From positions 12,090,001 to 12,154,000 of the forward strand of contig NC_135257.1 of assembly GCF_964204865.1 (NCBI RefSeq): a stretch of DNA of 64,000 nt. Direction: 5' to 3'. Under the pieces are notes generated by a model. The model had not been told where the DNA came from. It ran no database searches and was given only the letters and a program-made list of their open reading frames with translations. A program made the position numbers and the translations under genes. Source of the stretch: Styela clava. Lineage: Eukaryota. This document shows, one piece after another, positions 3,310 to 50,186 of this stretch (positions are counted from its first letter, which is position 1; each line of letters opens with the position of its first letter).

Positions 3310-6300
3310 TTATAATCGTCCATTCCTTTCAAAATCTTCATCTTGCAAAGTATATGCTTGCCTATATTTAATTCTTGAATCTTCATCTATATACATCAAC
3401 TTTTCATTGCGTTTTGTGTTTTCTCTGCTTCCCAAACTAGTGTATCTATGAATAAAGTCACACATCAATAGTACTCCCAATATAGGATTTCGATTACTTA
3501 AGCTGGAAGTATGATGTAGCAATAAATCATACCCTTTTTGTGTGGTTAACATGCTGGGTCAGAATAAGTTACCTACCTTATTCTGTTCAACATTACCAAT
3601 GTATTAAGGTAGATGGCGGAGAAAGACCAACTGATTGACACTTGGCAAACCCAGCACTCCTTTACCATATGCTTATTCATTCGCCAGTCTTCATTCTTTA
3701 CAATGAGTCATAAGAGCCAAACATCAATGGAATAGGAATCTCCATATGATCTTTTATTTTATATAGTTGTAGTACTTGAAAATTCGTTTGATTTGTGTCT
3801 ACAAACGCCAGATTACAAATTACAGTACAAAATCAAGATTAATAATTCAAATTAAATTTTTTACCCTCTATCATATAATACACAGTAAGGAAGGTGTAAC
3901 GATCGTAAGAATTCCCAAACATCATGGTAGCTCCAATCCTGAAAAAAAACATTAGAAGAGATATAAATGGAACGGGAACACTATTCTACATTGGATATCC
4001 CAACTGGACAAGTTTTCAATAGATATACCCAGATTTCATAACATTGTCATGCAACAAATTAATAAATGAAAGTCCTTTTTCTAAAATCAATATTGTCGGA
4101 ATTAAAACATATTCCTAAATCTTCTTAAATCAACTATACTCGATAATTTATTGACATAATATGGGAGTATTTTTATATCATTTTCATTATCCATTCATAA
4201 AAAATGCATATCGATTTACCAACTAGAATACTATAAAATATTTTGAATACATTCAGTATTCAAATTTTCAAAGTCGCCCGTTTTGGCCACAAACTCCTCT
4301 CGTTTAACAACTCTTCTTGACTACAAAGTGAAAATACAAATCTTACAAAGGATTCAGTAAAGGAAATAATTATAATCAAATATCAAAAACGCAAATGATA
4401 AATAGACAGTCAATAAAAACCAACCAGCATTGGATTAACTCTCATGTATGATGGCCAGTCATCATCAGTTGGAGAAAATGCTGCTAAATTTCTTGAGTAT
4501 GGATCTGTATATCTTGTTCCCATTAATGTAGCTTTAACTTCAGGGTGTTCTAACTTCAACTTTTCAAGCGCTGGCTTAATTTTATCATCGATTGTGACTA
4601 ATTTCAATTTGTACCTAAAAAAAAACAAAAGGTGTACAACTCAAATCTAAGGTGAATATATAGCTGTAATGCAGATAACACTACAAGATAAATAAAGAAT
4701 ATATATTTATCCCAACTAACCAAAGAGTTGATCAGCCTGCTTAATCATATAATGAACCAAGGCTTTGTCAGGCAATCAATCGGTAAAATTCGGTATGGCT
4801 GAGATATTGTATAGGAACATCTAACCAACACTCCAGATGAATAGATATAATAGGTACAGGAAACCATATTCATCCAATAGATGATAAATGAACCACCCAC
4901 CCTGTGATAGGAAACCAGTAAATATTCCTACTTATAATTATCTTCCAAAGGATTCAAATATGTGGCCATGGCACACAGTCACAAGGAGTTTGATGTTGAG
5001 GGCAAGTGAGTGTGTGAACCCAACTGAATTTGTTGTAACTCCTAAAAATATTGTTGGATTCCTCCCTGCAACAGGGTAGTTTGCATATACGCTGCACCGC
5101 AAATAAGACCCTTGCATTTGGAGCACATAATTAGTTAGCTCTACACAGACTAGAGATACTCAATATCATACATATTGCTGTGTTCAATATCTGTGAATAA
5201 GCGTTTCAAGGATCTTTACCGTTTACATGATTCCTCCATGAATCTACGAACTTCATCAAAAGGATTCGGATCTTTAACATATAATGATAATATTGGTTCT
5301 TTGCCTTCTGGATATTTTCTGAAATTACCAAAAGATTATTGTTTTTCTTTATTCAAGTATAAAGAGTCTAACAATCCATATTACCGATTAAATATTATGT
5401 GAGGCTGTTAAAATACCTGCTCCATTTTTGCAATATTTACAGCCATTTGAAATCCATACCTCATAACAGGACTGATAGCAAAAATTTATGATTGATGATA
5501 TGATTACAACATCTAGGGAACTAACTACAAAAACAATTTGTTAGACACAACATACCTACACAGAACTGCATAAAATAAGTGAAGCAATGCAGTGCAATCT
5601 TTTCCACCATTAAAACCAATGCACAATTCATTGAATGAATATCGTCTTAGCGCTTCTTCTATAATTTGAACCTGGTGTAAATTATATTCGGATAAGAGGT
5701 ATATGGTGATAGTATGAAATAATATCTCGAACATTAAAAACAACAAAAGTAAGCAAAATTCAAAGTCCACATTATTATTCAATTACAAAATGTTTCAGTT
5801 TATTTAAAATATACTTCAAAATGGTGCAGTTGAATAATGCCAAGAAAAAATAAAAATATAATGCTTGAAAAAAATTGTAGGAAAAATACTTTTAATTTTA
5901 TTTACAGAATTTTGGATAGCAGTTTGCTAAATTGGCATATAGTATCATAGTGATCGAAGAGGTTCATTAATTATTATTGTATCCATGTAATACTTACTGC
6001 CTCATCAACTTTCTTGGACAACGACTGTGACGTAAATGTCTTCTTGAAAACATCTTTACCCTGTAGCTCAGTTGGATTTTCTACATAATCTGAACAATTA
6101 ATATTTTATATCAAACTTTTTACTGAAATAAATATGATGAACTAAAAAGGTCAAAAGTTTTCAAACATACATCGGCAGTGAGAAGAGCTAGGAATACGCT
6201 CGCCACCATATCTCTGATTACCGAGCGTGGGTTTGCAGATTCGAACCCAGTGGGGATAATTATGTGCGAGAGGATTGCTGGAATCCTTACCACCATGGGA

Positions 6301-9300
6301 TTTCACTTAACCACTGGTCGGGTACATCTTCCTCCAGCATCATATCCATGCATTTGGAACTAATAACTGGCTAACTAATCACATACCCAACAGAGTGGCA
6401 ACCAGACAAGAGGCTGAGGTTCGCCATATGATTAAGTCATCTTATCATCTTATCTCTCCCTTGGGATAAATATGTGAATCCTATCTTGTCATATGGTAAA
6501 TCTTCCAGTGTAATTGGCTCTTCTGCTATTGAGCAGAATTCAGATCACAAATCATTTAATTTTTTTTGCTAATTACAGCCATGTCTATGCATCAGAAACA
6601 TAAAAGAATGCAAAGTGACAAGAGAAAAGTCAACTAGTTTTGAAACTAACTGAACATGATGTAAAGCAATGAAAATAAATGATAAATAGTTGCACTGCTA
6701 TGACTACCATTAAAAAACTAAACCAAAAAGGAAAGCTTAGCACCTGGACATGATAGAAAAAGATAGATAGATAAAACCACTGACTGACCTTTAACAACTA
6801 GGTGCTGTGGAATTGAATCCATCAGATATTTTGTAGCTTCTTCTGTTGCTTGAGAATTGATAGATTCTACAACTACTTTCACCTTATAGTAATTGTTGAA
6901 AAGATCAGGATATGATCCAATAGCAACACCAGCGGAGTGATATCTAAATTGAATTTACTACATATTATTGAAAATTCACTAAGAGACATTAAATAAGATA
7001 TTTATATCTATTCAACTTTTCAATTTTTTTTTTCAGTTTGAATACTTTGCAAACACTATATCTGTATTTTACTTAATCATGAATCCTGAGAATAGATAAG
7101 GTTGATGTATAAAAATCAATAAGAATCATACTTTTCTTGGCAAGCCGACAAATATTTTGCTATTCCTGTTTCTAATTCATCAACCAAAATTTTATTTGTA
7201 TAAAACTGACCTGAAAAATTTCATTTTGTTAAATAAGAGGCAGAGGCAGTTACAAATGATATCATTATTGTTTTTGAGGTCTGGACAAGTGGTCGGCAAC
7301 TGCGGCCCCCGGGCTAAATGCGACACGCAAACAATTTTTTTGTGGCCCTCGAACAACTTCACTTTTATTGCATAAAACAAGAGTTGCTCATAAACTTATT
7401 ATTATCTGTGTTTGGATATATGTCGTAACAATTGCTGTCGCGCATGTTGTTCGTTTTGTAGTAATTATGCAAACGTACCTACTGTTAGTTGTAATTGCCA
7501 CAGGAATAGGGGTTACGGGTGCGGCATATCATGTTCAATGTATCGATTGTTTACAGGTGGCATTTAATGTGGTCCAACGCTATCAAAAATGTGTATGGTC
7601 CAGTTTTACATAAAGTTTACCAACACTAGTCCAGACTATTCCATCTTCTGTTGGTTAAACTTTACCAGAATCTATAAATAGCTTGACTTAATATGAAATA
7701 TAACGTGGTTTAAAGTTAATAGTCATGACAGATGACTACATTTTATTTAATTAATTTATTCAATTAAATTAATTTAATGTCCACAAGAATAAACTTTTTA
7801 TAATTAACCATCTCACCTTCTCCTTTAAATAAATGCTTCAAACTCACTGCGGACTTCTCAAGTAATGAAGGAATACCTGTGAAGTAATAAGGCTGAATTT
7901 AGTATTTATTGCCCCAGGATAAAACAAAATATATACAACAGGTTGTTTCATAAACATTTAGGAGAGTTATATAAACTATGGTTTTGTAAGCGTTAGAATG
8001 GTTATGATAGACAGGTCATATTAATGATGTATTTATTAATAAACTAAAAGCAATAAACTGAATTTAAAAGCAATTAAAACCAATGGGAATATGTAAAATG
8101 CCACCAAAAAACAATATGGGTTCGAATGTAGTAAGAAATATACAAAAGGTAGTTAGGTATATAGGAAAGGTAGTTTAGCTGGAAATGGCATTCATAGAAT
8201 TTTACATTTTTTTTCCTTTCAATATTCAAGGATGTAAAACACAAATGAACTACTGTAACTCTTTGCAGCGTTGCAATATACTGTGAGAAGGATTTACAGA
8301 AATAAACAAACTTACCTATTTGTACAATGATAATGTACTTTTAAAATTTTGCTTGAATGATATGGATATGCATCTACGCCAGGGGTTCCCAGGGGTTTTA
8401 TCTATTTTACATAATACCACCACATGACCAAACTCGAAAGTCCAGTGAAAGAAGCTCCGAAGTTTCATGAAAAAAATATATATTGGCCTGGGGTCGCACT
8501 TTAAAGTTGTCCTTGGGGTCGTCCTGAAAAAAGCTTTGGAAACCCTGATCTATAGTTTTAAAATACCTGGAAATAGAAAAACATTTTTGACTGCGATGAC
8601 TGGAAATCGAAATGAACGTCCTGTAGAAGCATCATGTCCAAAGTGAAGTACATCAGATTCTGGAATATGAGCCATTTTCATTTCTGGTGAATTCATTGGC
8701 TTATTACCAAAATACCTGCAAAAATGAAAAATAAAACTAAAAAATGTTTTAACTAAGCATTGGTATACATACAAAATACTGTGGATCAAAGTAATATTAA
8801 ACTAATATGTTGGACAACTAATCACAAGCTAGCCCAGGTTTGTAAAGAATATCAGCTGTTCATCTTCAAAGCATAATTGTCAGTTACAAATTCTTGTATG
8901 TCGCTGCTCACTCGATAAACTTATTACTGTGACCTGTCTTTCCATCCATGTTCTTTCAAAAACTTTGTAGACTCTTACACTTGAGATACACAAATAATTA
9001 ATTTTTCAACATTTTCGCTGGTTGCACATGAATATTTCACTGTGATTTTACTATATCAGTAGCCTTAATTTCTCACTTTATTCAATAGCACAAGCATTTT
9101 CAGAGTGAACATAAATCAAGATATATAATATATCCCAGACAAATGAATATTTGTGCCAGGAAAAGTCAATTTACTTTTTTAATGACCACAAAGATGCATA
9201 GAAAATAGATAAAGAAAGAGAAAAGTATGAGTCAAATTTGTCATTCCAAGAAGCCCAGCTTTCCCTACCTTGTACAGAGATCTACTAAAGTTTGGTTGGC

Positions 9301-10885
9301 CACAACTGATTCATTAAATGCATTGGCAACTCCATCAAAGGTTTTATCATCATGTGTGGGTCCGATTCCACCAGAAGTCAACACATAATCATATGCGTTT
9401 GAAAAAATGCGAACCTTTCAATGAATAAAAACTGTAACAATTAAATTTCAGTTTAAACAAAATTTATACAGAATCATGAAATATGAAAAAGACAGATACA
9501 AAATTAAGAAAAACAATGATATAGAAATATATTTTGAATTTTAAACTAAATTCTTGGAATACCTCATTAGAAATTTCTTGAATATCATCTCCAATCACAG
9601 TTATTCGCTTTAATGAAACTCCCAAAGAATGAAGAAGTTGACATAAAAAATTTGAGTTTGTGTCTTTTGTTTGCCCTTTCAAAATTTCGTCACCTTGAAA
9701 GGATAAGTTGTAAATTAAGAATATATCACTTCAATCTCGAAAATCAAGAAACATATATTGACAATATATATATATGTTTCAATGATTCTCAACAATGATA
9801 TTACAAATAGATTTTCAACAGTCAGACAGTACAGTAGGAATCATTCATTTTCATATGGGTGCTTGAATGGGAGGCGCAGTTCTTACCACTTCATGGCGGC
9901 TCCTGCCACGAACACACCCCGGCGTCTCTTGTATTTAATGGGGTATGCATCTAAAAATGAATACCTGGCTAACTAATCTCACTAGCAACTAATCCCAACA
10001 TGGACTGGTAACTGGACGAAAAGCCATGGTTTGTTATAGGATTAAGTTATTATATTCTTTTTCGGTAGTCCCGAAGTATGTTAGCCAAGATGGCGGACAC
10101 CGGAACGTAGTATGTGTACCAGGTTAGGGTTAGGCCATAATTGTATTCCATTTTACCTTATTTTAGTTCTATTACGAGTTCGGGGACAAGCCAAGTGACT
10201 CCCTTAGTATTTGTACCTGAAATTATGACCTAACCCCAACCTGGTACACATACTTCGGGAGTACCCCTTTTTCTCCACCCCGGGATGAATATGTAAATTC
10301 TATCCTAATATCAGAATATCTTCTTAAAATATTGAGAAAGAGATTTCAAATTGTCAAACAAAGTCAACAGACTCAACATTAACACAAATCTAAAACAAAG
10401 CGATAAATGGCTTAATATATTAATGATTAATTGAACATGTGTTTTGTATGTTAATATAAAAGACTGATATAATCCTAAGCTTCAAATTAATTTATACAGT
10501 TATATATAGTGGATAGGCAACTAATTTGCCGACAGTATTACAAATAAAATAAATAACATAAAATATGTATAAAAAAATTAGCAGTTGATATTATGGAAAG
10601 TCATGAAAGACTTCAATTTTTTTAAGACAAAGGTTAATTTAATTCAAATTCTATTTAATTTTCATCAAATAACATTTATACTACTATAACGGTACAATGA
10701 AATATTTCCAATCTAAGTTACAGCAAAAAGCAAACTGATGAAATGCCAAAATGGAGCCAATTATTCTAGGCATATTAAAAGTTCTCACCTATTACAATAA
10801 TTCCCGCAGACTTCGGCATTATGAAAGTACTGTTTTGTTTATGGAATGTTTTGAACGTACTCCTCACGCATAAACGAAGAGACAT
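3310..10885 (-). CDS. FLAD1: Bifunctional FAD synthase (molybdopterin-binding/CinA-like N-domain plus PAPS-reductase-like FADS domain), 13 exons, 507 aa
   Basis: Exons 10885-10789, 9693-9563, 9414-9269, 8715-8567, 7876-7817, 7210-7132, 6943-6789, 6089-5998, 5671-5556, 5318-5220, 4614-4425, 3938-3865, 3445-3310; all GT-AG, total 1524 nt in frame. Motifs [70 protein letters not shown]. Confidence 0.95.
6170..6484 (+). mobile_element. tRNA-derived SINE copy in a FLAD1 intron
   Basis: Similar along its length to 22608-22814 and 29188-29498; degenerate B box (gattcgaaccc); shared 3' end gggataaatatgt(g/a)aatcctatc. Confidence 0.7.
7287..7628. mobile_element. hAT (Charlie-like) MITE
   Basis: Termini aagtggtcggcaac ... 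tttaccaacacta with flanks GTCTGGAC/GTCCAGAC (degenerate 8-bp TSD); GCGGCCC subterminal motif. Confidence 0.55.
9868..9915 (-). repeat. Fragment of a dispersed repeat also at 29680-29742
   Basis: Reverse complement of gttcgtggcaggagctgccataaagtggtaatacctgcgcctc seen at about 29697-29740. Confidence 0.55.
10063..10266. mobile_element. MITE with GGGTACTCCCGAAGTATG-type termini and internal GGTTAGGGTTAGG; inserted in a SINE 3' fragment
   Basis: Inverted termini ggtagtcccgaagtatg ... catacttcgggagtaccc; related partial copies at about 12955-13170 and 29881-29990. Confidence 0.7.
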
Positions 10886-11825
10886 CGGTACCTACAGTAC
10901 ATTACCAGACGCTAAAGTCGAGGTTCAGAAGTTCGAGGGAGTTCGAAATAAACTTATGGACCTTTCCACGACCTTTAACCCCCAGAAAATTCTTCCTATA
11001 CTTTACCATTGCAAAATTTCCGGGGCTAGTTTAAGAGTGCTTTTGCGAGTTGGCGTCTGTAAAATGGGGTATATGTTTCAAACCATCATTATGATTTATT
11101 GCATACAACAATCTGTTTTTTAAAGGTACCGGTAAAGAATTTCAGGCTAGTCTATCACAGCTATTTCTACACTAATTTTTATTACTGCAATTAAATAAAA
11201 ACTCCTAGGAAGACCGAGTGATCATTGAATTATCTGATTTATATTTAAGTTTCCAAAACACAACTGAAAACTAACGAATAGAGTTCAAAAACGCGAAAAC
11301 GAGGTAATGTTTACAACCACGCTTGAAAATCTGTCTGAGTGAATAAAGTGTCTGAGCGGATGCGAAAAGGGGGCATTGTTACGTCACTTTTTGCATTTTG
11401 CTGATTGGCCAATGTCACGAAGTAAACAAGGAGGTCGATGCCCGGGGAAAGGTCCATACTTATGTAAACCTTACCATAAACTACCACAAACAATTTTGTG
11501 ATTGCGCAATGTTTATTGTTGCGATGGATGATTGATTTTAATGTCACCACAAGATGTCGATATAGAGCTGATTAAATTTTTAACGAAATTAACTGTGATT
11601 TTGACATTTTTCGTAGGTGGGGGAAACTACCGGTATGACGGGAATACTGGAGTGGGCATAGGAATCTTTCTTCAGAGTGAGATAGGAAAGATAATAATAG
11701 GGATAAGGAAAATTTATGTTAGCCTAGTGGTTATTTGTGCGCACCTCGTATTTCTGTGATTTGACCTGCATCATCATTGTTTTTCAGATTTGTCAATTTG
11801 TTTGAATCAACTTTTCTGTTTCAAA
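10886..11825. promoter_or_regulatory. Putative bidirectional promoter region FLAD1/ETFA
   Basis: Divergent start codons 940 bp apart; overlapping ATTGG/CCAAT (about 11404-11413) and TTACGTCA (CRE-like) motifs; acceptor ttttcag at 11787 upstream of the ETFA ATG. Confidence 0.5.
10957..11456. mobile_element. ~500-bp MITE between FLAD1 and ETFA
   Basis: TIR TGGACCTTTCC...GGAAAGGTCCA flanked by TA on both sides; a second diverged copy at about 23672-24157. Confidence 0.8.
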
Positions 11826-14709
11826 ATGTTATCTTCGATCGGCAGAACCAATTTATTTCGACAGGTGTGTTTGAATAGCAGCTATAGTGTAGGCCTATAC
11901 GATTTGTTTTGTAACCTCATTTTACATTCGCTTTGGGATTTATTGAATATTAATACAAGTCGATTTATTCTGGGGCTAAAAGTCTGTAAACCGACATCTT
12001 ATACAATACCGGTCAGCCGGTACGAATAAATAAATGATATCTTTTGAGATATTTTTTTTTATTTGTTGGCATAGTTGTATTATCGTACTGTATTAGTACC
12101 GGTAGCTATTGAACTTTTCCTATGACAACAAAGATGGGAAGACAAATAGTCAACATCTTCTAAATACAGAAATATAGTGGTATAAATATTTTTCTTCATT
12201 ATTCAGGTAGGAAATGTTGCGCAAAGATTTCAGAGTACCCTTGTGATTGCTGAACAAAATGGTGACACACTTTCTCCAATCACGCTGAACACTATTACTG
12301 CAGCCAGCAAGCTTGGCGGTGATGTCAATTGTCTATTGGCGGGAAAGTCTTGTGCAAAGGTAAAAATTGTGAATGATTCAAAACCTACCCAAAATTTTAG
12401 CCAAGTAAATGGAAATCATATTTTTGGGTTTGTCAATTTCATTTGGCTGTTTGAACAGGTTAAATTTTGACTATTTGGAAAGATTTTTAAAATTGTAATG
12501 AAATAGATAGCAATTACATAACATTTAGAGATGTTTCAAGTATATTTCAATAATTATTCTAGTGGATTCTGTAACTTTCTGTTTGACTTTGTGAAAACAA
12601 ATTTGTTACTGTTCATTTTTAAAGGCTGCAAAAGAACTAAGTGGAGTAAAGGGAGTTTCAAAAATCTTAGTTGCTGAAAATGATGCATTCAGTGGATTTC
12701 TTCCTGAGGCTCTTACTCCTTTAATTGTTGCTGCACAATCTCAGTTTTCATACTCTCATATATTGGCTGGTGCTAGTGCACTTGGAAAGAACTTGATGCC
12801 AAGAGTGGCTGCAAAGCTGGATGTAGCAGCGATTTCTGATATCATAGATATAAAAGCTCCTGACACTTTTGTGAGAACAATATATGCAGGTATAGTTTGT
12901 GATCCTTTTTCTTATCACAAGTTCATTAATTATCTGTAGATAGATTTCATCAGATGTACTCTCGTAGTGTGTGTACCAGGTTAGGCGATAACTTTACTCA
13001 GATTTTCCTTATTTTAGTTCTATTACGAGTTCGGGGACCTTCTGTGTTGGGCAAGTGAATATACCCCATTGCCCATAGACTTCAGCCCCTTTACGCAACT
13101 TGATGTGAGGTAGACGAACAAAATTAGTTACCTCCATATTGGTACACAACACACACTTCTGGAGCGTCGACCAATTATATTCTGATGCATTCTCAGTTCT
13201 AAACACAATTTGGCCAATTATATTTTGAGCTCTTTATTGTTTACATTACTATTAGCACATACTTTTTTTTTCAGGCAATGCAATTCAAACAGTTAAAGTA
13301 ACAGAATCAGTGAAAGTATTAACAGTACGAGGAACTTGCTTTGAAGCAGCAGAAGATGGTGGGAGCGCAACTCAAGAAGGTAGGTATTACTTGAAATGAA
13401 CCTAATATAAGAAATATTTTCCAATGTAATTCGTTAAACTTTTATCACATCACCTCTAGACCATGGGTTCGCAATTATTCGATGTTATGGACCCTTCTGA
13501 TGATATGCCTAAGATTTGTCAACCACTTCTAATAAATAATACGAGACAATAGTTGGTATGTGCAAGTTGTCATAGAGAACTGCCTTGAATTTATAAGGAT
13601 TATATTAAGTCCAAGATTTGCTCTGTCATAAACTCACATAGATAATTTACTGAACTTGAATAAAAAAGTCTGTCCATATGAGCGAGATCTTGTGGCACTC
13701 TGTAGCCTGGTGTATTGAGTTGCCCACGTGAGGAGACCCGAGTAGTTACATTTTTTCATTACGCAAGCAAAGCTCTTCAAGCCCTATAAACTTCCCTGAC
13801 CTCTCCAGACCAAGCCTGATACAACTGCTGTGCAATGCCCTCACTCCACGCACACAGATTATTTCTTACTACTTTTCAGCTTTCACGTCTGATGTTTCAA
13901 ATGACCAATCCAAATTTCTTGGACAAGAACTGAGCAAGAGTGACCGCCCAGAACTCACTGCAGCAAAAACTGTGATATCAGGAGGTAGACAAATCTGCAT
14001 TAGTATAAAATATGCTTACATCCCAGTGTAGTATAAATATAAACTATTCTTTTTATCTTAGTATATTGGTCTCAATTTTGAATAATTGCACATCTTTATT
14101 TTTAAAAGAATGCATATTCAGCCAACAACTTATGCATTGGTGAGAGAGATGATTGAATTTTTGACAAATTTTATTGGCACATAATATACCCTTGCAGATT
14201 TTGGTCTGCATTTTGAAAATGCTTATTATGAAAGTTTTCTGTATAGAGGTAAGTGAAGGGTATTACAAATTTTATTTCCAAATTCAGGCAGAGGAATGAA
14301 GAATGGAGAGAATTTTGAGCTACTCTATACTCTTGCTGACAAACTAAATGCCGCTGTTGGTGCATCAAGAGCTGCGGTTGATGCAGGTTTTGTTCCTAAT
14401 GATATGCAAGTTGGACAGACGGGAAAGATTGTTGCCCCGGTAAGTGCCATTCTGCTTACCGCTAACCGTGGCCCGTGACACCATTTTTTTTCTTTCTAAT
14501 AAATTTACATTGCACTCTTCTTGCAGGAATTGTACATTGCTGTGGGTATTTCCGGAGCTATTCAGCATCTTGCCGGAATGAAGGATAGTAAAACTATTGT
14601 AGCGATTAACAAAGATCCTGAAGCTCCCATATTTCAAGTTTCTGATTATGGATTAGTTGAAGATCTATTTAAAGCCGTTCCTGCGATGACAAAACTAGTC
14701 GAATCATGA
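11826..14709 (+). CDS. ETFA: Electron transfer flavoprotein subunit alpha, mitochondrial, 7 exons, 333 aa
   Basis: Exons 11826-11864, 12207-12359, 12625-12889, 13275-13379, 13880-13984, 14288-14439, 14527-14709; 1002 nt in frame. Motifs [66 protein letters not shown]. Confidence 0.97.
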
Positions 14710-14807
14710 CAGATTAAATGATACAAAGTGACTTTATTAATGCTTAATTCCTAATGAAAAAATTTAAAAAATATCTAATTTATGTCATGCAAGCCTGTTG
14801 TATGTTC

Positions 14808-16097
14808 TCAACTTAGGGCATCCATCTGTTCTTGAATAGTTTCCAGCTAAAAATAGAAGTTGTTAATTAGTTGCCTTACCAGATAGAGTTGGTGCTTTTG
14901 TTCTATTTTGTCTGTCCTACCTTATTATAAAATGCTAAAAGCTCTTCGTGATTAAATTCCATCAGAACATCATGACTGCCTTTCTCACTGGGATCGTTCA
15001 CATTTAGCTGCAAAACTACATTTGGTTCGGTGATTTTTGACTTTGATCCCTGTGCCACTTGCAGATTGAGATGCCAGTCCACTCTGTCAAGCTAGAGATA
15101 TAATAAGGCACATGGATGAGTGCTGAATTGTTTGGCAATCTTTACTATTATAAATCAATTAGTACCTGATTAGCTGTCAATGTCTTTTTCTTCAATCGGG
15201 ACACTATATCTCTTCCATATTTTTGCCAACCCTGTGACAGCATCCCACTACGTTCTTCATCCATACCAAGAGATGACAGTTGCTCTGATAAAATGGCTGG
15301 TTTCCAGCTATGGTATGCTGCCTGAAAATAACATTCTATGGTCATCCTTCAGACATGGGTGGTGGACAGTTTGTTCCAGAATTGCTCGTCTTACCCTCTC
15401 ATATATATGTTTTATTGCTTCAAGCATGTGGTTGACGCTATCTGTATTGATTTCAAGTACTTCAGATAACTTGTATTTCTCATCATCAGTAAAAGGTGTC
15501 TTGTTATCTGTCCCGATACTCTGAGCTACCCGACTAGCAAGTTTTGGAAGCTTAGATCCCTCGGTGGAATTCAGCACATCAATTCCCTTGGAAAATCTGA
15601 AAATAATTATACAGGGTGGAGAACTATTTTAATAATATCCAATATTGGAATAGCTAAGTTCTCGTATGACTTTCCAAGGGAAGTGCAATTGATTTGTTCA
15701 TTGGCAATATGTAGAATGAATGCATGGACATTGGAAGAGTTCGGAATAACAAACTTGATTCTCGTATGACTTTCCAAGGGAAGTGCAATTGATTTGTTCA
15801 TTGGCAATATGTAGAATGAATGCATGGACATTGGAAGAGTTCGGAATAACAAACTTGATTCTCGTATGACTTTCCAAGGGAAGTGCAATTGATTTGTTCA
15901 TTGGCAATATGTAGAATGAATGCATGGACATTGGAAGAGTTCGGAATAACAAACTTGATTTCCAAACTCTTTTTGGACCAAGATTTCAGCAAAATATGCC
16001 CTATTTTTTTTAAAGATCATTTGATTGCAATTCACTGTAGTTTATGGCCAATTCAACATGTATGAAATGGATACCTGATTGATTCCTCGAAGGCCAT
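14808..16097 (-). CDS. COMMD10: COMM domain-containing protein, best matching COMMD10, 5 exons, 196 aa
   Basis: Exons 16097-16075, 15596-15395, 15321-15166, 15091-14921, 14846-14808; 591 nt in frame. COMM domain LDRVDWHLNLQVA...MEFNHEELLAFYNKLETIQEQMDAL; AAYHSWKP segment typical of COMMD10. Confidence 0.88.
15661..15960. repeat. Three identical tandem copies of a 100-bp unit in COMMD10 intron 1
   Basis: ctcgtatgac...aaacttgatt starts at 15661, 15761 and 15861. Confidence 0.95.
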
Positions 16098-16394
16098 TAT
16101 TGAATGTTTCAGATTACAATTTTATTTTTAAATCTGTAAGTTAGAAAATACAATTGATTGGGCACTGGTATAAAAAAGTTTTCTGGGTCGCAGTGACCAC
16201 AACGAAAAAACATATCAACTATATACATTAACAGTTTATTAATCTGATTACCAAGGAGCATCTCCCAATATATAACACCACAGATATATAAAATTCATTT
16301 ACAGACACACTTGACAGATCTGGTGTATGTAACTGGAATAGGTATTATGCTGACTTGAGTTTTAAAGGTAGAAGATCATTTGATAATATAATGG

Positions 16395-17729
16395 TTAAAA
16401 CTGTGAGGAGTCTCTGCCAAAGAAAAACGTTTTCATCCAGTCAACAGGTACTTGCATTCTGAGTTTCCAGTTCCCAAGCCGAGTTAAGTAGGCCGAGCGC
16501 CATAGTATCCAAGAATGGAAACCTTTCAACTTTATATCTGCACCACCATGTGGAAGTTTCATATCAGTAAGTGCAGAATATCCTCCAACATAGGCGAGCA
16601 TGCCCATATTTTGAAATTTAAAAGGTTCCGTTTCTTCACCATTGAGGTATTTAGCTAGCCATCGACCTTTTCTCTCAGCAACTTGTGCTGTGCTAGGCAA
16701 AGGCTTGTCTTTTATTTCGGCGCAGTCACCAAGTGCAAATATTGTATCGTCTGGTGTATCAAGAACACTAAGATATTCATTTGTTATTAATTGATGTTGC
16801 TTGTTTTTCGGAAACTGTAACCTTCTTGTAAAGTTTCTAGGTGAAAGTCCTGTTGACCACACCACTAATCCACATGGTATTTCCTTCCCATCTGTTAATA
16901 CAACCCTATCCTTTTTTACTTCAGAGACTGTTGCTTGAAGGAGTTCAAATTGTTCCCTTTTTGCAATTTTGTTCTCTGCATAATCCCGTAAAAGTTTGTC
17001 GAAAGATGCAAGTATATGGTTAGCTTCTATTAATGTCACTCTAACTATTTTTTGCATATCGCCATATAGAAACGATACATCTTGTTTAAGAAAATCATAG
17101 ACCTCGGCACCAAATTCAACACCAGTTGGTCCACCACCAACTATTACAATATGAAGTAGCCTTTCTTGATCTTCTTGAGTGGATTTCGGTTGCACTGCCA
17201 ACTCAAAGTTGTTTATGATCCTGCTGCGGATCTCACGGGCGTCTTTAATTTCTTTAAGAAAACATGCATGTTCGAGCACTCCCGGTACTCCAAATGTGTT
17301 GCTGACAGCACCGACACCTATAACAAGCTTATCATAATGAAGTTCATATCTGACAGATTCATCCACCTCACTTTTACATAACAATACATTTCTTCTAGAG
17401 TCAACACTCACTGCACTGGAGAAGTGATAATCTTTGCTGTGGCGAAAATGGCTATTCCTCACAGGTTCAATGATGCTTCGAAATTCCAATGTACCAACAG
17501 TTGTTGAACACAGTAATGGAGTAAAAAGAAAATGATTTCTAGGGCTTACTACCGCAACATCGTATTGCTTTTTGTCAATATTTTTGAGAACACTATAACT
17601 TCCCCATCCAGTGCCTAAAATTATGAGTTTTTTTCTTCCCGAATTATTGCTCGATAAATTTCTAATGATAAAATGATTTGTAGACCAAATAGCAGATGGC
17701 CACATTAACGACATAACTTGCCTCAACAT
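16395..17729 (-). CDS. Type II (alternative, non-proton-pumping) NADH:ubiquinone oxidoreductase, NDH-2/NDX-like, intronless, about 444 aa
   Basis: Two Rossmann motifs (ILGTGWGS; IVGGGPTGVE), FLFTPLL, GTLEFRSIIEP, ALGDCA, AQVAER, C-terminal WRSAYLT...DW...FGRD; no EF-hand insert. The track ATG at 17795 lies inside an acceptor (ttttatgcag), so M23 (17729, MLRQVMS..., presequence-like) is the likely start. Confidence 0.93.
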   Translation of the reverse strand: MLRQVMSLMWPSAIWSTNHFIIRNLSSNNSGRKKLIILGTGWGSYSVLKNIDKKQYDVAVVSPRNHFLFTPLLCSTTVGTLEFRSIIEPVRNSHFRHSKDYHFSSAVSVDSRRNVLLCKSEVDESVRYELHYDKLVIGVGAVSNTFGVPGVLEHACFLKEIKDAREIRSRIINNFELAVQPKSTQEDQERLLHIVIVGGGPTGVEFGAEVYDFLKQDVSFLYGDMQKIVRVTLIEANHILASFDKLLRDYAENKIAKREQFELLQATVSEVKKDRVVLTDGKEIPCGLVVWSTGLSPRNFTRRLQFPKNKQHQLITNEYLSVLDTPDDTIFALGDCAEIKDKPLPSTAQVAERKGRWLAKYLNGEETEPFKFQNMGMLAYVGGYSALTDMKLPHGGADIKLKGFHSWILWRSAYLTRLGNWKLRMQVPVDWMKTFFFGRDSSQF

Positions 17730-20504
17730 GATAAATTGCAGTTTAAAGTATGACACACTGTAGTATACAAAGACATATGTCCAGTATGTCTGCATAAAAG
17801 ATTAGATATAGAAATATTAATAAAATATGACATTAATAATATAAAGAGGGCAGACAGCACCAAACATCTCTTTTTTTTGATTGGCTCACTCAATGAGTAA
17901 TTTCAATAAATATGCAATAAATGTATAAAATAAAGTCCATACTCCATTTTGCGTTCATAATCCATTTGTTGAAATTGAGTTTCATAGTTTTTCCAGTTTG
18001 TTTCAGCAGTGATAATTAGTCATAATCATAAAGTTATTTTGATAATTACAATGATATAATACAATAAAAAAAGAAAAAAAAATTAGTTGATGTATAAAAC
18101 TTATCATAAACCTGATTTACTATTTAAAATAATGCTTTACATAAATTCTGTTATTCCTTTTCAAAGGGTTTGTTACTCGGAACTTTCTATACTTTTTCTA
18201 TACATTCATTTTTTTCTGCTTTTTAATAAGGAGAGTATTATCAGGTATTTTATTTTCAAATATTATACGATTTCTGAACTATTGATAACAAAAGAATAAT
18301 TGCATTTAAATCTACTCTACTTATAAATATTAAGGACTTAATAAAGGATCATCAAAAGTCAATACTATACAAGAATCATAATTCATAACAAAATGTATTC
18401 TAATTATTTTAAAATTAAGTAAACAAAATCATCACAAATTTCCTGGGTAAACTCACACTGTCACAAGACAAAAAAAATGCGTGACACAAACCGGTCTTCA
18501 CTGCGTAATATTACAAACATATTTCATTTCCAGCCACTCTTTCAATACTGCAATATCTGGTTTTGTTTATCAAGGACAAAATATCGCCGCCCAACTGCCA
18601 ACGTCTTTTACTGGGTTAACTGTATGTGCAGAGTGCAGTGTAGCGCAGGTTTATCGTGTTTCCCGAAAATAAGACTCGGTCTTTTCTCAATTTTCGTTCG
18701 AAAAATATTTTGGGGGATGTCTTTTATCAAAAACAAAATTACAAAGTGGAGAATTACGAAATTTTAATTGATATTTTCAATATTTTGATCATGGCTAATT
18801 TTATTCGATAATATAGCAAACAACGGCCTCAGGTCCGGTTACCAGTTCATGTCGGATATGAAGAATGTAATTGATACCAGGGCATGTCTTTTTAACACTT
18901 GCAAACATATGGATTATACTCTTCCACCCAACAATGATTTCGCTTTAATTGTAAGTTTAAATAAATTTTATTGTATGATAAATGAGAACTACAAGCACAA
19001 AAGGAACTATTTAAAAACAAAAGAATTTTTAATTGTTACCACTACAGAATCGCGCGTAACATTTTGTAGGGGAGTGGGGAGACCGGGGATAGTCGGAACA
19101 TCTGACTACTTAATCGTAATTATTTCTGCAGTCATGTACCACATTACAACGTCTTTGGCGCACAACGTATCTATGTTATTGCTTCACCTAACAGTAACCT
19201 TTAGTTTCCCACAACGCATTTCGTCTGCAAGAAATTGGACCTCGAATGTGCGCGTGTAATTCGTTCCAACTTGCCCCGAGGACGGGGTAGCTTGGACCAG
19301 TCATGGGGCAAGTTGAAAAGTAAAAGAAAAATGACGAACAAGTTAACAAACTCTAAGAATTTTTTTAAATTCAACCACGGGACTTCACAAAGGATCATAT
19401 GGGGATATATCTACAGCAAAAGTTAGCTTTTCTGCACATCTTGCAGTGCCACCTATGCGCATCGGCGCAGGAAGCTTCTTCGTTATATGTCATCTTTCGG
19501 TGCAAATAGACGTCTTCTTCACGCGGGTACAAAAATGCCACGGCATTGGTTCTTCTCATATCCACTCGTCTTAAAAATCTTGTTTTCATCTCTACTACGG
19601 TTTCTGCGTCGCTCGTACCAGAAACTTCCGGAATTTTTCCGATATGGTGCGTGATGGATAGAAATCCTCGGAATCTCACCACAAAAAATCACCCTGCTCG
19701 AATGATTCGGCCTTTTCCTCTATATCTTCCTCGCTATCATCAGTGGTGTCGTGAATAGACATAACATTCCGCTCATCTGAGATCGATTCATCATTGACCA
19801 TCGAACTTTTCCTGGGGATCTTGCGTTGCATAGTTTTTGTACTGGATGCACTCTTTTTCAGATATCTAGCAAAGCCAGGTCTTTTTCAGAAGTTCGAGTT
19901 AAAATACAGGATTTTTTCTGTTTTCTTCTCACAACGATCTTTCGCACCTGTAGCTTGGGTTTTGTGATTGGTCGGACTATTTCTGGAGTCACTCCGGTTT
20001 CAGACTCGACCTGCGATGGCCCTCGGTTATCTACGTGAACTTCTTCTGGGGGCGGACGTTCAGTGGCCAGAGATGGGGAGAAGTCATCTTCGACAAAAAT
20101 ATTTCTATCCAAAGGGTAGATACCTGTTTTGGAAAACGACCTATAGAAGCTCTGGGCGTTCCCCCTTGTTCGAAATTAGTCGACTTTCTATCGCACCAGC
20201 GTAATATTTTTTGAAAGCAAAAAAGACTGATACATCCAAGAGTTGTAGCTTGTGTGAGCAATGCGGCGGGAACGACAGAAAAACAATCCCATGAGGTCAA
20301 TGGTGCAGCGCACATGGGCCTGGTAATGTGCCAAATATTGGACAAAATTTTCCATCTTCATCCATCCAGAACCGTTTTCCTCCCCGACAGAGCCTGCTGG
20401 GCAGCAATTAGGGAAATATGAGCAAAAATTAACTTTTGGAAATAAGATAATTGGTGGCACAGTGTTTTCAATAGCGTTTACAGCACAACAAACTGTTATC
20501 GTAC

Positions 20505-25147: not shown

Positions 25148-28100
25148 GTCTATACTATACGTACAGCCAGCGGAACAATACGAAATAACCATTTTCAACA
25201 GCCAAACAAAACGGAAACGTATAATCCGACTTGCAATTGACAGCCAACTGGACGTTTTTGTTTTATTGCCGTCCAGTAAACAAGGTCACGTGACCCGTGC
25301 AAGTCCTCTATATATGCCACTTACAGACTATATAGGCCACAGAATATTTGGAAATAGAAATTAATGGCTGTTTCTGTAATGCACGGTTGTGTGAAAGAGA
25401 AGAATTTTACTAATGTCGGCTGGTCTAAATCTAAATTCATAGAGTCGACAAGAACCTGGGAAGCAATGATGAGTTATGCCGGAGTGGAAAGAAAGTAGTA
25501 CTGGAAACGATTGAGAGGTGAAAAATCAAGTTGTAGACAGACAGTTGATGTTTTAAAATAGTCCATAGTCCATACTCATACAGTCATAGGGCATTTCAGA
25601 CTGTGATATATCAAAATTTAGTGTAGATATAGTCTAGTAATGGTATGCAAACACTGCTGGACTGTAGTACATGCAATGAGCTATATACTTTCATTGAGTA
25701 CGTCAGATAAAATGCATTATGTATTCAAGGTATTAGTTAGTATTTATTTAGTGGTATTTTTACATTCATGCTGTTTCAAATAGGATTTTCTTCCTCATTT
25801 TAGATACTGTACTACAAAAGAAAACGGCAATGTTCCACCAATCCGACCTAACGCAGGCTCTCAGTCGTAAAGGTATATGAAAATCATAATAGTTGCAAAC
25901 AGCTTAGATGGGCTATTCATATTGAAATACTTTAGCACATTTCTGCAATTGGAACTGCTCATCAAACTCATGTTGGAGACTTCATTGAGGTTTTCAATTC
26001 ATTTTTTTCTCAACTATAAAGATCTTTTAAGGATAACGAGGCATTAATAAATAAAGCTGAGGAATTTGTTTGTTCACTGTATGAAGAGGATATAAAGAAT
26101 GTAAATGATACCAGGGCACGTCTATTTAACACTGGCAAACATAAGAATTTTACTCTCCCACCCAACAATAATTCACTGAAGAAGCATATGGCCCTCAAAT
26201 CAGTTATTGAGTTGGCAAACTGCAAGTGTAAGAAAAATAGTCAAAATAATTTATGCAAGTGTGCCAAAATCAACTCAAACTGCTTAAAGCTTCAAACTTA
26301 TAGAAGAAAAGTCGATTTTTGAGATAGTGGATTCCGAAAGCAATTCAGAAGAAAGTGAATTAGATATTGCAGTTGATTTAATAAGCATCATTTTTTTTTT
26401 GAACATTTGTTAGTGTCGTAGTCCTGTTTCTAGAAATAATATTGCCTTTTATCAGATACATAACCACATAAACTAAAAAAAGACCAATTGTAATATTTCT
26501 GTTCACTATGTTATGTACATATTGTACATTCATTTAATTTTCTTTACTTTTCCGGTAAATTTCTAAGTGAGAAATAACTGATTTATTTGTGTTTTCGTGC
26601 TCACGATGTTAATTTATAACCTCATTGCTTAAAAATGAATACGTTTGATAGCTTCTTTAAAATGGATGTAGCTTTTTATGCTGTTCTTGTTGTAAACTGC
26701 TTGTGGTTATTACATAAAATTTATTCGCTAATGTGAATCAACGTTGTTGGTGTCGCTGCTTTCGAGGTCACTCGCGACTCCTGTAACACAATTGAAGTAT
26801 TTTTTGTTGTTGGTTACATGTATGCCATATTTTTCGTAATCTACCTAATAAATTATGATTGAATGAGGAAGTCCGATTTTGGTCAGGCAAAACATTACAG
26901 GAATACATTTGTGTTAGTGTGCTGTAGGGCTCTCGAATTGCATAGTTCTTCTGTATGTGTTGTGAACTTATGGTTATTGAATTTCCGGGAACCTCTTATA
27001 TTCAATTTTGCATCAGGATTGTGGAACAAGATGTAATGCGTTCAGTATGTTCATTTTCACACAAAACTGAAAAATTTATTTAGTTACCAGATGTGCGCTA
27101 CAAAATTCATTTTCTGGGCGTTTTCAAGGCTTCGTCTCACGGCCCATATCCGTGGTAAAGATCTACAAGTGTTTAATAACTTACTTATACATTTTTCAAC
27201 AACGTCTTAAGATAACTTAACTAATAATAACTAAACAGGGCTATGGAAAGGTTGCCCAACTCAACGCAAGGTCGAGCAGTAATAACTAATATTCATCCGC
27301 TCGCTAACAGCTGATTCGATTCAATTGTTACGTCATGCAGAAGTCATTGTTCATTGCCGAAAATGTAGAGAATATAAGACAGATCGTAGCACATATTTCT
27401 TGTAGTAAAAGCGTTTTTTCCGTAAAACGTGCAACCTTTGGAAGTGGGAACAAGGCAATATTTGTTACTAAATTTTTTTAAGGAACATTTTAAAATCATT
27501 TTCAGGTAGTTACCTGATGTGCGCTACGTAACTCACTTTCTACGCGTTTTTCAGGGCCGCGCCTTGCGGCCTATACGCTACTCTCCGAAGTTCCAAGGGT
27601 GTAAGACCGAAGAACAATTTGGCAGCTCTGATTGCATACTCTGCTAATTCTTTTTCTTCACCTGCGGTAAAGACGAGTCTACTTTTCTTGTAGCCTACGT
27701 ATCGAACATCAGAATTCATCCTATACTTTTTAACATATCTATTGAGGGTCACATGGGGAATACCAAATTCTTTGCCGGCCTGTCTGATGGTTTTTTGATT
27801 ATCTACAACTTCCATTACCGCATGCAACATTTCTGTTTTTAAAGTTTGACCTTGTTCACTTCTGCGTTTGTATTTCCTCATTTCTCATTAAATTATTTTC
27901 ACTAAAAATGATAAAACTTCGATAAGCTAAGCCAGTAAATTCATAAAGTAATCACTTACAACTGTCCTAACTGGCACAGCACGGCGACCGGATGCTACCA
28001 ATAAGCTTAGGATAGCGGCCTAATCGATGGGTGAGGCACATGGGGCAAGTTGAAACGGTCATATTGCCCCTTGCAGCAAAGTTTCAACTGGCCCCGACGT

Positions 28101-48857: not shown

Positions 48858-49541
48858 ATGAATATAAGTTTGCAAGGTGGCGATCACCAGATTCCTAGCT
48901 CCGGATTAGGTAGCCATCCTAATAATGATCGTATGAATTTTTCACATGATTTTTTCCAACAGCCTGCCACAATGGAGACACAGCAAATGAACATTGAAAA
49001 ATCTGAACCTCCTGTGTGCACTTCTACTGGGATATATTTATTAAAAGATCAGGTTGAGCCATCAGTTGTATCGGGAAGCACAAATCTTCTAGCACATTAC
49101 AATTTAGAAACAACATATAACAAATTTTGCGGCGGAAAGAAAGTAAAAGAAAATTTAAGTTCATTTCTTCCGGATTTGCCTGGGTTTATTGACACACTTG
49201 CAATACAAGACAATAGTAGTTTAAAAGCGTTGATCGATCGACCCCCTGTTGGTAATAAAGAAATTCAACCACTATCACAGCCTTTATTATCAAGTTTCCG
49301 TTTGCATCCTGGGCCTTTGCCTGATCATTATCGTTCCTTATATCAATCAATTGACTCAACACGACGAAAAAGCAAGCATCATAAAAAACGTAGGTCAGAC
49401 CCAATGCAAAATACTCATATTAATGAAGGAGAAGAATTTGAGCCCAGAAAGCATAAAAAGAAAAAACATGAAGATGGTGAAAAGAAAAAGAAGAAAAAAG
49501 AAAAGAAAAAGAAGAGGGAAAGAGATAAAGAAAGAACCTGA
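48858..49541 (+). CDS. MED19: Mediator complex subunit 19, intronless, 227 aa
   Basis: GSTNLLAHYNLE..YNKFCG.KKVKE.LSSFLPDLPG.ID, DNSSL..LI.RPP, FRLHPGPLP and Lys-rich C-terminus; acceptor tttttccag at 48835. Confidence 0.93.
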   Translation: MNISLQGGDHQIPSSGLGSHPNNDRMNFSHDFFQQPATMETQQMNIEKSEPPVCTSTGIYLLKDQVEPSVVSGSTNLLAHYNLETTYNKFCGGKKVKENLSSFLPDLPGFIDTLAIQDNSSLKALIDRPPVGNKEIQPLSQPLLSSFRLHPGPLPDHYRSLYQSIDSTRRKSKHHKKRRSDPMQNTHINEGEEFEPRKHKKKKHEDGEKKKKKKEKKKKRERDKERT

Positions 49542-50186
49542 TTTGCAGGACACACAAGAATATTTTTTGCCATCAAGTTCAATCATTCAAAAAAACTTGA
49601 GGGCGAAGTGAATCACCCATTTGGGACTAGCGATTCAAACCGGCAGATAGTTCTTGTTAAAATTGCAGATGGAATTTCAGGGCAATCAATCATATATTAT
49701 TTGAATAAAACTTGCTGTCCCATTGATTCATCTTCGTCAATAAACTTGAACAAGAAAGAGCTATTTATAATAAGATGCGAAATGATAATCTCTTCTCAAA
49801 TTATAGTCTTACTTTATGTTTGAATATCTTGGCCCTTTGATATTTCAATTGTACTGTTTTGGTCATAATTCTAGTCAAGAGGATTGTATGTACAGGTCTA
49901 TATGCATCAAATCATATGTCGCTAATGGATTATGACGGGGGCTCTTTCATCTTATCAGCAAATATGCTGTAAAAACGGAATTTACTGTGATAATATTGAT
50001 AACAGTTTTGCTGTAAATTTCATGTCATTTGCTTGAGATCCTGATTGATCAAATTTGGAATAGTATTTATATTCTATTTCAGAATATTACAGTTTATCTT
50101 TTCACTATATCTTAGGCCTTATTTTTAAATTATGTCCATCTTTTTTGTATTTTCTTTTTTAGATACTAAACAGCTCTATTGTTAGA

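Follow-up and report, generated by a model that had tools for sequence, protein, structure and literature searches.

Four consecutive genes within 14.4 kb

A 64,000-nucleotide stretch of a 377-Mb genome assembly (G000:C9:12,090,001-12,154,000; G+C 31-44%), referred to here as the window, carries genes for a FAD synthase (FLAD1), the alpha subunit of electron transfer flavoprotein (ETFA) and a predicted alternative NADH dehydrogenase (NDH-2) in close proximity to one another. We consider here whether this neighbourhood is a selected flavin module or a product of chance. As judged from protein matches and a tree, the window appears to belong among the ascidians. FLAD1 makes FAD, ETFA together with ETFB carries electrons from acyl-CoA dehydrogenases, and NDH-2 oxidizes NADH without pumping protons; COMMD10, the fourth gene of the neighbourhood, encodes a part of the Commander trafficking complex. 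At this locus, the same biochemical roles would follow from family membership.

FLAD1, ETFA, COMMD10 and NDH-2 are four consecutive genes within positions 3310-17729 of the window (about 14.4 kb). A sequence-only reading of this DNA had placed FLAD1, ETFA, a fourth gene and NDH-2 in a row, and this order was confirmed by Pfam matches, PDB matches and gene borders read in the sequence. The expected Pfam families were matched by nine of the ten open reading frame (ORF) pieces that were scanned. The distances that had been given between coding sequences proved exact when read from start and stop codons: 940 bp between FLAD1 and ETFA, 98 bp between ETFA and COMMD10, and 297 bp between COMMD10 and NDH-2. 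FLAD1 and ETFA are divergent, ETFA and COMMD10 are convergent, and COMMD10 and NDH-2 share a strand, with NDH-2 upstream. Both the sequence and the RNA contigs described below indicate that the three flavin genes are three transcription units, with COMMD10 interposed.

RNA evidence came from 13 sequencing runs of one organism. In nine of these, 22-37% of the sampled words were present, the share that exons alone should give, and in the other four 72-77%, the share that DNA should give. Three RNA-like runs (X1, X2 and X6) and one DNA-like run (X10) were aligned to 10750-16749, all in the form of Logan contigs, which report structure and not levels. All four genes were represented in spliced or covering RNA contigs, and FLAD1 exon 1 and ETFA were each found in three of the three RNA-like runs. 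The principal features of the locus are as follows.

3310-10885, minus strand: FLAD1 (FAD synthase) coding sequence, at least 11 exons, start codon (ATG) at 10885 and stop at 3310; Pfam, PDB and open frames
10886-11825, no strand: spacer between the FLAD1 and ETFA start codons, 940 bp; sequence
11826-14709, plus strand: ETFA, seven coding exons, ATG at 11826; Pfam ETF and ETF_alpha, PDB and RNA joints
14808-16097, minus strand: COMMD10, five coding exons, 196 codons, ATG at 16097 and stop at 14808; Pfam, PDB and RNA
16395-17729, minus strand: NDH-2/NDX, intronless, 444 codons from the second in-frame ATG; Pfam, PDB, tree and an X1 contig

FLAD1, ETFA and the spacer between them

The FLAD1 frame has a second in-frame ATG at 10819. 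The molybdopterin-binding-like N-terminal part of the protein is encoded by exons near 9268-9730, of which the piece 9464-9682 matched MoCF_biosynth (PF00994) above the cut-off (2.7e-8, 34.1 bits). The PAPS-reductase-like C-terminal FAD synthase part lies in exons between 3310 and 5782. The piece 4410-4628 matched PAPS_reduct (PF01507) at 3.5e-4 and 21.1 bits, which is below the cut-off of 22.5, as would be anticipated for a query of one exon piece, and the exon 9 piece 4413-4640 matched solved FAD synthase chains in the PDB at 2.2e-18. Both FLAD1 domains were found in one gene, in an exon order that fits the minus strand, by searches that used exon pieces and not a joined protein. RNA support for the FLAD1 exon borders comes from the joint between exon 1 and exon 2 only, where an X1 contig leaves exon 1 at about 10785 and resumes with letters that match exon 2 at 9660-9689.

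About 500 bp of the spacer between FLAD1 and ETFA (10955-11458) consists of a high-copy element, and the spacer measures about 440 bp without it. The ends of this element are 29-nt imperfect terminal inverted repeats (10955-10983 and 11430-11458) that are 76% complementary. The summed depth of X10 contigs was 61,000-112,000 in bins 10950-11549, compared with about 10-20 in neighbouring bins. A second very high-copy element was observed at 12950-13149 in ETFA intron 3; across both elements X10 depth was 61,000-284,000, compared with about 20 nearby.

The structure of ETFA was read from RNA joints and includes an exon upstream of the coding sequence.

11862-12203, 12356-12620, 12887-13271, 13378-13877, 13983-14285 and 14439-14525, plus strand: ETFA introns; RNA
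8805-8837, plus strand: 3' end of a non-coding exon of ETFA that lies upstream, antisense inside FLAD1; one X2 contig

PF01012 (ETF) was matched by two ETFA exons and PF00766 (ETF_alpha) by two exons after them (pieces between 12243 and 14709), and exon 3 corresponds to residues 62-149 of human ETF alpha (5e-34, PDB). All six ETFA introns, with GT..AG joints, were seen as spliced in each of X1, X2 and X6, and none was seen as spliced in X10. A splice acceptor between 11787 and 11788 opens exon 1, 38 nt before the ATG. In a 2052-nt X2 contig, the letters before 11785 match 8805-8834 with two mismatches in 30, and this match is unique in the assembly. A donor between 8837 and 8838 (CAG followed by GTTTGT) is joined in this one contig of one run to the ETFA acceptor at 11788, skipping over FLAD1 exons 1-3. 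For at least one ETFA RNA, the start thus seems to lie more than 3 kb upstream, antisense within FLAD1, and the two genes may overlap head-to-head. At its other end, the 3' untranslated region (UTR) of ETFA overlaps the 3' end of COMMD10, with an X2 ETFA contig reaching 14848 and the COMMD10 stop lying at 14808. Within these overlapping 3' UTRs, positions 14772-14780 form an indel-rich polymorphic stretch: X1 and X2 have 14 extra letters behind 14780, and X10 differs in another manner.

A possible explanation for this arrangement is that FLAD1 and ETFA alone form a functional unit, with a shared bidirectional promoter and antisense coupling through the ETFA start in FLAD1, and that NDH-2 merely lies nearby. 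The two genes are divergent with 940 bp between their ATGs, roughly half of which is inserted high-copy repeat; in the X2 contig, position 8837 is spliced to the exon 1 acceptor with canonical GT..AG borders; and both genes appear in all three RNA-like runs. Such pairs are known, and passages of one report describe them as often conserved and co-expressed (PMC1487180). However, because an acceptor opens ETFA exon 1, the promoter of this gene may be located elsewhere, and the upstream exon is present in one contig from one run. Co-expressed neighbours are moreover 'rarely functionally related' in the wording of a passage of PMC5572396, so a pair of this kind calls for no functional reason. We consider a functional unit of these two genes rather doubtful; if genes at the locus are truly coupled anywhere, it is most plausibly where these two overlap head-to-head.

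An intronless alternative NADH dehydrogenase gene

The open frame of NDH-2 extends back to 17795, and its RNA contig has a 3' end near 16320. The ORF 16395-17795 matched both Pyr_redox_2 (PF07992; 1.3e-43, 150 bits) and NDH2_C (PF22366; 7e-14, 52.2 bits) above the cut-off, and it is the sole NDH2_C match in the assembly. PDB searches matched it to yeast Ndi1 at 2.2e-64, to Plasmodium NDH2 at 1.1e-57 and to FSP1 at only 6.5e-12; the difference between FSP1 and Ndi1 ruled out an AIF/FSP1 identity for this oxidoreductase. We placed the protein in a tree of 39 rows, comprising the window sequence and 38 of 120 listed proteins (the 82 left out were mostly from molluscs, spiders and nematodes), where it fell into a tunicate clade with Ciona, Phallusia and Clavelina proteins with a support of 100/99. 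Residues of the G-x-G-x-x-G type (G39/G41 and G198-G203) are invariant in 17 NDH-2 sequences of the tunicate clade. By its sequence, the protein belongs to the NDH-2 family and is a predicted alternative NADH dehydrogenase. A protein search found the family to be widespread in non-vertebrate animals, and passages of PMC7056681 describe an animal alternative NADH dehydrogenase under the name NDX, including a Ciona enzyme expressed in flies.

Coverage of NDH-2 varied among the RNA-like runs: X1 contained a 1560-nt contig from 16320 onward, X2 contained a 114-nt piece only, and X6 contained none. In X6, bins 15950-16749 had a depth of 0 though ETFA, COMMD10 and FLAD1 exon 1 were present, a gap in contigs being weak proof.

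COMMD10 and its spliced leader

14847-14920, 15092-15165, 15322-15394 and 15597-16074, minus strand: COMMD10 introns; CT..AC joints in RNA contigs
16133-16135 (about 16134), minus strand: trans-splice acceptor of COMMD10 (cttacag followed by a); X1 contig

Each of the four COMMD10 introns was supported by one or two of the three RNA-like runs. Of the pieces 14903-15082 and 15308-15577, matches were obtained to COMM_domain (PF07258; 3.4e-13, 50 bits) and, below the cut-off, to COMM_HN (PF21672; 9e-4, 20.2 bits). Two exons matched PDB chains at 3.5e-12 and 1.7e-3, and every significant match was to COMMD10, which ruled out the possibility that this is a hidden flavin or mitochondrial gene. COMMD10 intron 1 contains a perfect tandem repeat of 3.0 x 100 bp at 15659-15960.

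The X1 contig of COMMD10 carries 21 letters behind 16135 that do not come from the locus, and the end of this leader reads ...GGAGTATTTGGTTGTATTAAG. The leader motif (its reverse complement plus AG) occurs in 634 copies in the assembly, compared with 0 for the reversed control. These copies have sharp borders, and their flanks are unrelated after AAG (four contexts among the six loci that were read), with GT following one copy. Many copies stand in same-strand pairs 5-7 kb apart, and a long terminal repeat was therefore considered and rejected, since the sharp borders and the unrelated downstream contexts agree better with a spliced leader. Because the leader is foreign to the locus and its motif is multi-copy with sharp borders and unrelated flanks, we conclude that the COMMD10 mRNA is trans-spliced and carries a spliced leader (SL), as observed in one X1 contig.

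The presence of a leader raises the question of whether NDH-2 and COMMD10 form an SL-resolved operon, in which a single transcript would be cut into separate mRNAs for NDH-2 and COMMD10, the latter trans-spliced. Such an operon would tie NDH-2 to COMMD10 and not to the flavin genes. The two genes share a strand with 297 bp between their coding sequences, and in X1 the NDH-2 contig ends at 16320 and the acceptor of the COMMD10 leader follows about 186 nt later, at about 16134, contig ends being approximate. Ciona does have operons whose downstream genes are trans-spliced, but according to passages of PMC1488885 those operons characteristically lack intercistronic DNA, candidates were sought at less than 100 nt, and trans-splicing affects about half of all genes in Ciona. 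A leader alone therefore proves nothing. Moreover, no contig of X1, X2 or X6 bridges NDH-2 and COMMD10, and X6 has COMMD10 without NDH-2. Given the gap of about 186 nt, the lack of a bridging contig and the gapless operons of Ciona, an NDH-2/COMMD10 operon is possible but not indicated, and we regard it as unlikely.

A flavin module or a compact block of genes

Of the features that characterize a functional cluster, we found physical adjacency; common membership of a pathway or complex was absent. The only other PF01012 (ETF) locus in the assembly, presumed to be ETFB, lies at C4:363 kb. ETF-QO lies at C5:6.70 Mb, AOX at C17:6.67 Mb and flavokinase (riboflavin kinase, RFK) at C10:9.49 Mb, compared with C9:12.09 Mb for the window, and COMMD10 is unrelated to the flavin genes. 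The ETF-QO match itself (G000:C5:6701920-6702237) stands in an uninterrupted frame of 611 codons, and that gene may be intronless.

We estimated how often such a neighbourhood arises by chance with a model of 15,000 genes and about 100 flavin genes, a number that we assume from the size of the human flavoproteome, in which four-gene runs with at least three members were counted. The expected number of such flavin runs per genome was 0.018, and the simulated chance of at least one was 0.012. For about 1000 mitochondrial genes, 12-17 such triples are expected per genome. The sequence-only reading had treated the grouping of three flavin genes among four neighbours as a matter for such a test, and the triple did turn out to be nominally rare (0.012-0.018 per genome). 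Its rarity is only nominal, however, as the flavin theme was chosen after the genes had been seen and mitochondrial triples are expected in plenty.

We somewhat favour the reading that the locus is a compact block of ordinary genes combined with an old linkage of ETFA and NDH-2; a co-regulated module shaped by selection is improbable. Under this reading, four ordinary nuclear genes, separately transcribed and presumably served by independent promoters, would lie closely packed in a 14.4-kb segment of ascidian chromosome. The finding of three flavin genes among four would then most likely be a by-product of tight packing and of the old ETFA/NDH-2 linkage. This linkage may have been kept passively in several ascidian lineages, probably because there is little breakable DNA between the genes, owing to overlapping 3' ends, to divergent starts and to an acceptor that follows closely on the upstream gene.

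ETFA and NDH-2 in other tunicates

Several observations weigh against the reading of a compact block. The nominal P value of the flavin triple is about 0.01-0.02. FLAD1 and ETFA stand head-to-head with 940 bp between their ATGs and with one ETFA contig starting in FLAD1, an arrangement that could couple both genes. The remaining points concern other tunicates, in which we paired proteins from separate searches by the identical size in bp of the ENA contigs that carry them; the search with the open frame of ETFA exon 3 returned 61 proteins, including exon-sized ORFs. ETFA exon 3 and NDH-2 were found on contigs of the same size in four cases: 1,697,056 bp (P0162 and P0004), 858,404 bp (P0144 and P0007), 1,414,166 bp (P0128 and P0013) and 708,281 bp (P0160 and P0184). 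Between those assemblies, NDH-2 protein identity is only 72-81%, and identity to the window protein is 67-70%. The organization of tunicate genomes, in passages of the ANISEED 2017 report, diverges fast, and microsynteny is lost rapidly (PMC5753386).

Of the eight ENA contigs in the tunicate clade that carry NDH-2, four also carry ETFA, the scale of the comparison being that of contigs. NDH-2 contigs without a matching ETFA measured 765,142 bp (P0009), 2,089,782 bp (P0012), 26,477 bp (P0183) and 9,165 bp (P0021). Sharing is found in four of the five species-level lineages with contigs larger than 700 kb, a count that follows from the 99% identity of P0009 and P0184. The divergence of NDH-2 among those lineages is the same as that of each from Ciona, and Ciona robusta compared with C. 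savignyi is a known case of scrambling, as mentioned in a passage of the Oikopleura scrambling paper (PMC11067885). Since contigs of 0.7-1.7 Mb are shared in many lineages and tunicate genomes rearrange rapidly, these contig-scale data speak for an ETFA/NDH-2 linkage that is old and probably tight. For FLAD1, a word search with the piece 4413-4640 over proteins of 42-133 residues yielded 13 candidates, of which none was significant; this search was uninformative on full-length FLAD1.

We also scanned metagenomes with the 17-sequence NDH-2 alignment and obtained 354 relatives, of which 80 loci were kept. Only one of these loci, L002, was clearly from a tunicate; most others were 42-50% identical and bacterial-looking or otherwise non-animal. 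This 8.9-kb contig encodes an NDH-2 with 100% identity to P0008, a protein that falls in the tunicate clade. At 4571-6467 of L002, an intronless gene for ATP synthase subunit c lies 170-190 bp upstream of an intronless NDH-2 on the same strand, whereas the ATP synthase subunit c gene of the assembly analysed here is on C3. Searches of L002 and the other loci among the 80 with 18 exon queries from the window (ETFA, COMMD10 and FLAD1) gave no matches at E<=1e-3, and no COMM or ETF domains were found in the 10 longest frames of the 2.4-kb stretch downstream of NDH-2 in L002. The same 2.4-kb distance in the window spans all of COMMD10 and the last two, highly conserved, exons of ETFA. The presence of ATP synthase subunit c and the lack of COMMD10 and ETFA matches indicate that the immediate neighbourhood of NDH-2 differs in that tunicate. 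The ATP synthase subunit c and NDH-2 genes of L002 represent a second close pair of respiratory genes and a possible operon. Synteny across tunicates, which the sequence-only reading had named as a check on its proposal, was thus borne out in part: four further assemblies have ETFA and NDH-2 together on one contig, but NDH-2 has other neighbours in L002.

These results bear directly on the possibility of a selected flavin or ubiquinone-pool cluster, in which FLAD1, ETFA and NDH-2 would share a regulatory domain and be co-induced, for example by hypoxia or sulfide. Such a cluster would unite the supply of FAD (FLAD1) with two FAD-dependent entries to the ubiquinone pool, ETF and NDH-2, both of which bypass complex I. 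The confirmed adjacency, the co-occurrence of ETFA and NDH-2 on one contig in four of five lineages (contigs larger than 700 kb), the nominal P value of about 0.012-0.018 and the overlapping head-to-head arrangement of FLAD1 and ETFA are all consistent with such a cluster. It would also be undescribed: a search of the available literature found no paper that joins FLAD1, ETFA and synteny. Nevertheless, ETFB, ETF-QO, AOX and RFK are unlinked to the locus, COMMD10 is interposed among three transcription units, the neighbours of NDH-2 differ in L002, X6 contigs lack NDH-2 though the other genes are present, and the category was picked post hoc. We find a cluster of this kind decidedly unlikely. 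We give similarly little credence, and if anything still less, to the proposal that ETFA and NDH-2, as two FAD enzymes feeding ubiquinone beside complex I, constitute an ancient ascidian microsynteny block, with FLAD1 set head-to-head against ETFA and overlapping that gene. Selection on the coordinated control of flavin supply and of electron entry without proton pumping would have preserved such a block, which would then be a rare chordate metabolic cluster. Of the co-regulated module put forward from the sequence, the old ETFA/NDH-2 linkage has held; the remainder found no support, in view of the three transcription units, the interposed COMMD10, the unlinked partners, L002 and X6.

Implications and other features of the window

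Should the block prove to be a selected unit, pathway-themed gene clustering would gain one of its rare examples from animals, and the regulation of alternative respiratory enzymes in sea squirts would become easier to approach. Such enzymes have been tried as tools against complex I defects, according to passages of PMC7056681. The value of the locus as it stands lies in checked models of four genes, in an animal NDH-2 that is expressed and intronless here, and in the old ETFA/NDH-2 linkage. The genes themselves are ordinary orthologues, and the locus is a modest curiosity, which illustrates how readily themed runs of neighbours arise post hoc.

Two features elsewhere in the window were recorded.

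48858-51926, plus strand: intronless Med19 ORF (227 aa); about 645 bp further on, the same strand carries an open frame of 579 aa that includes an adaptin N-terminal region
27540-27881, minus strand: ORF with an HTH_psq domain, probably a remnant of a pogo/Tigger-like transposase

Comparison with known systems

The locus resembles the metabolic gene clusters of fungi and plants, and cases of conserved animal microsynteny, in the adjacency of its genes, in their shared theme and in the retention of part of the linkage across species. It differs from them in that the pathway is incomplete, with ETFB and ETF-QO elsewhere, in that an unrelated gene lies inside, and in that the linkage is kept at contig scale.

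FLAD1 and ETFA also invite comparison with vertebrate head-to-head pairs. The GPAT-AIRC pair of the purine pathway and the HSP60-HSP10 pair share bidirectional promoters of this kind. Like such pairs, FLAD1 and ETFA are divergent, have less than 1 kb between their start codons and are both housekeeping genes. Vertebrate pairs are defined by transcription starts no more than 1 kb apart, whereas the distance here is from ATG to ATG and half of the spacer is transposon-like. In addition, an acceptor opens ETFA exon 1, and the start of one isoform seems to lie about 3 kb upstream, in FLAD1. The definition of the vertebrate pairs and their tendency to be conserved and co-expressed are set out in PMC1487180 and PMC2648788.

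In comparison with the SL-resolved operons of Ciona, NDH-2 and COMMD10 are likewise same-strand neighbours with a leader on the downstream gene, but they show neither an intercistronic distance below 100 nt nor a dicistronic contig. NDH-2 itself resembles the NDX of Ciona intestinalis: the two proteins are 66% identical, belong to the same family and have the same architecture of Pyr_redox_2 and NDH2_C.

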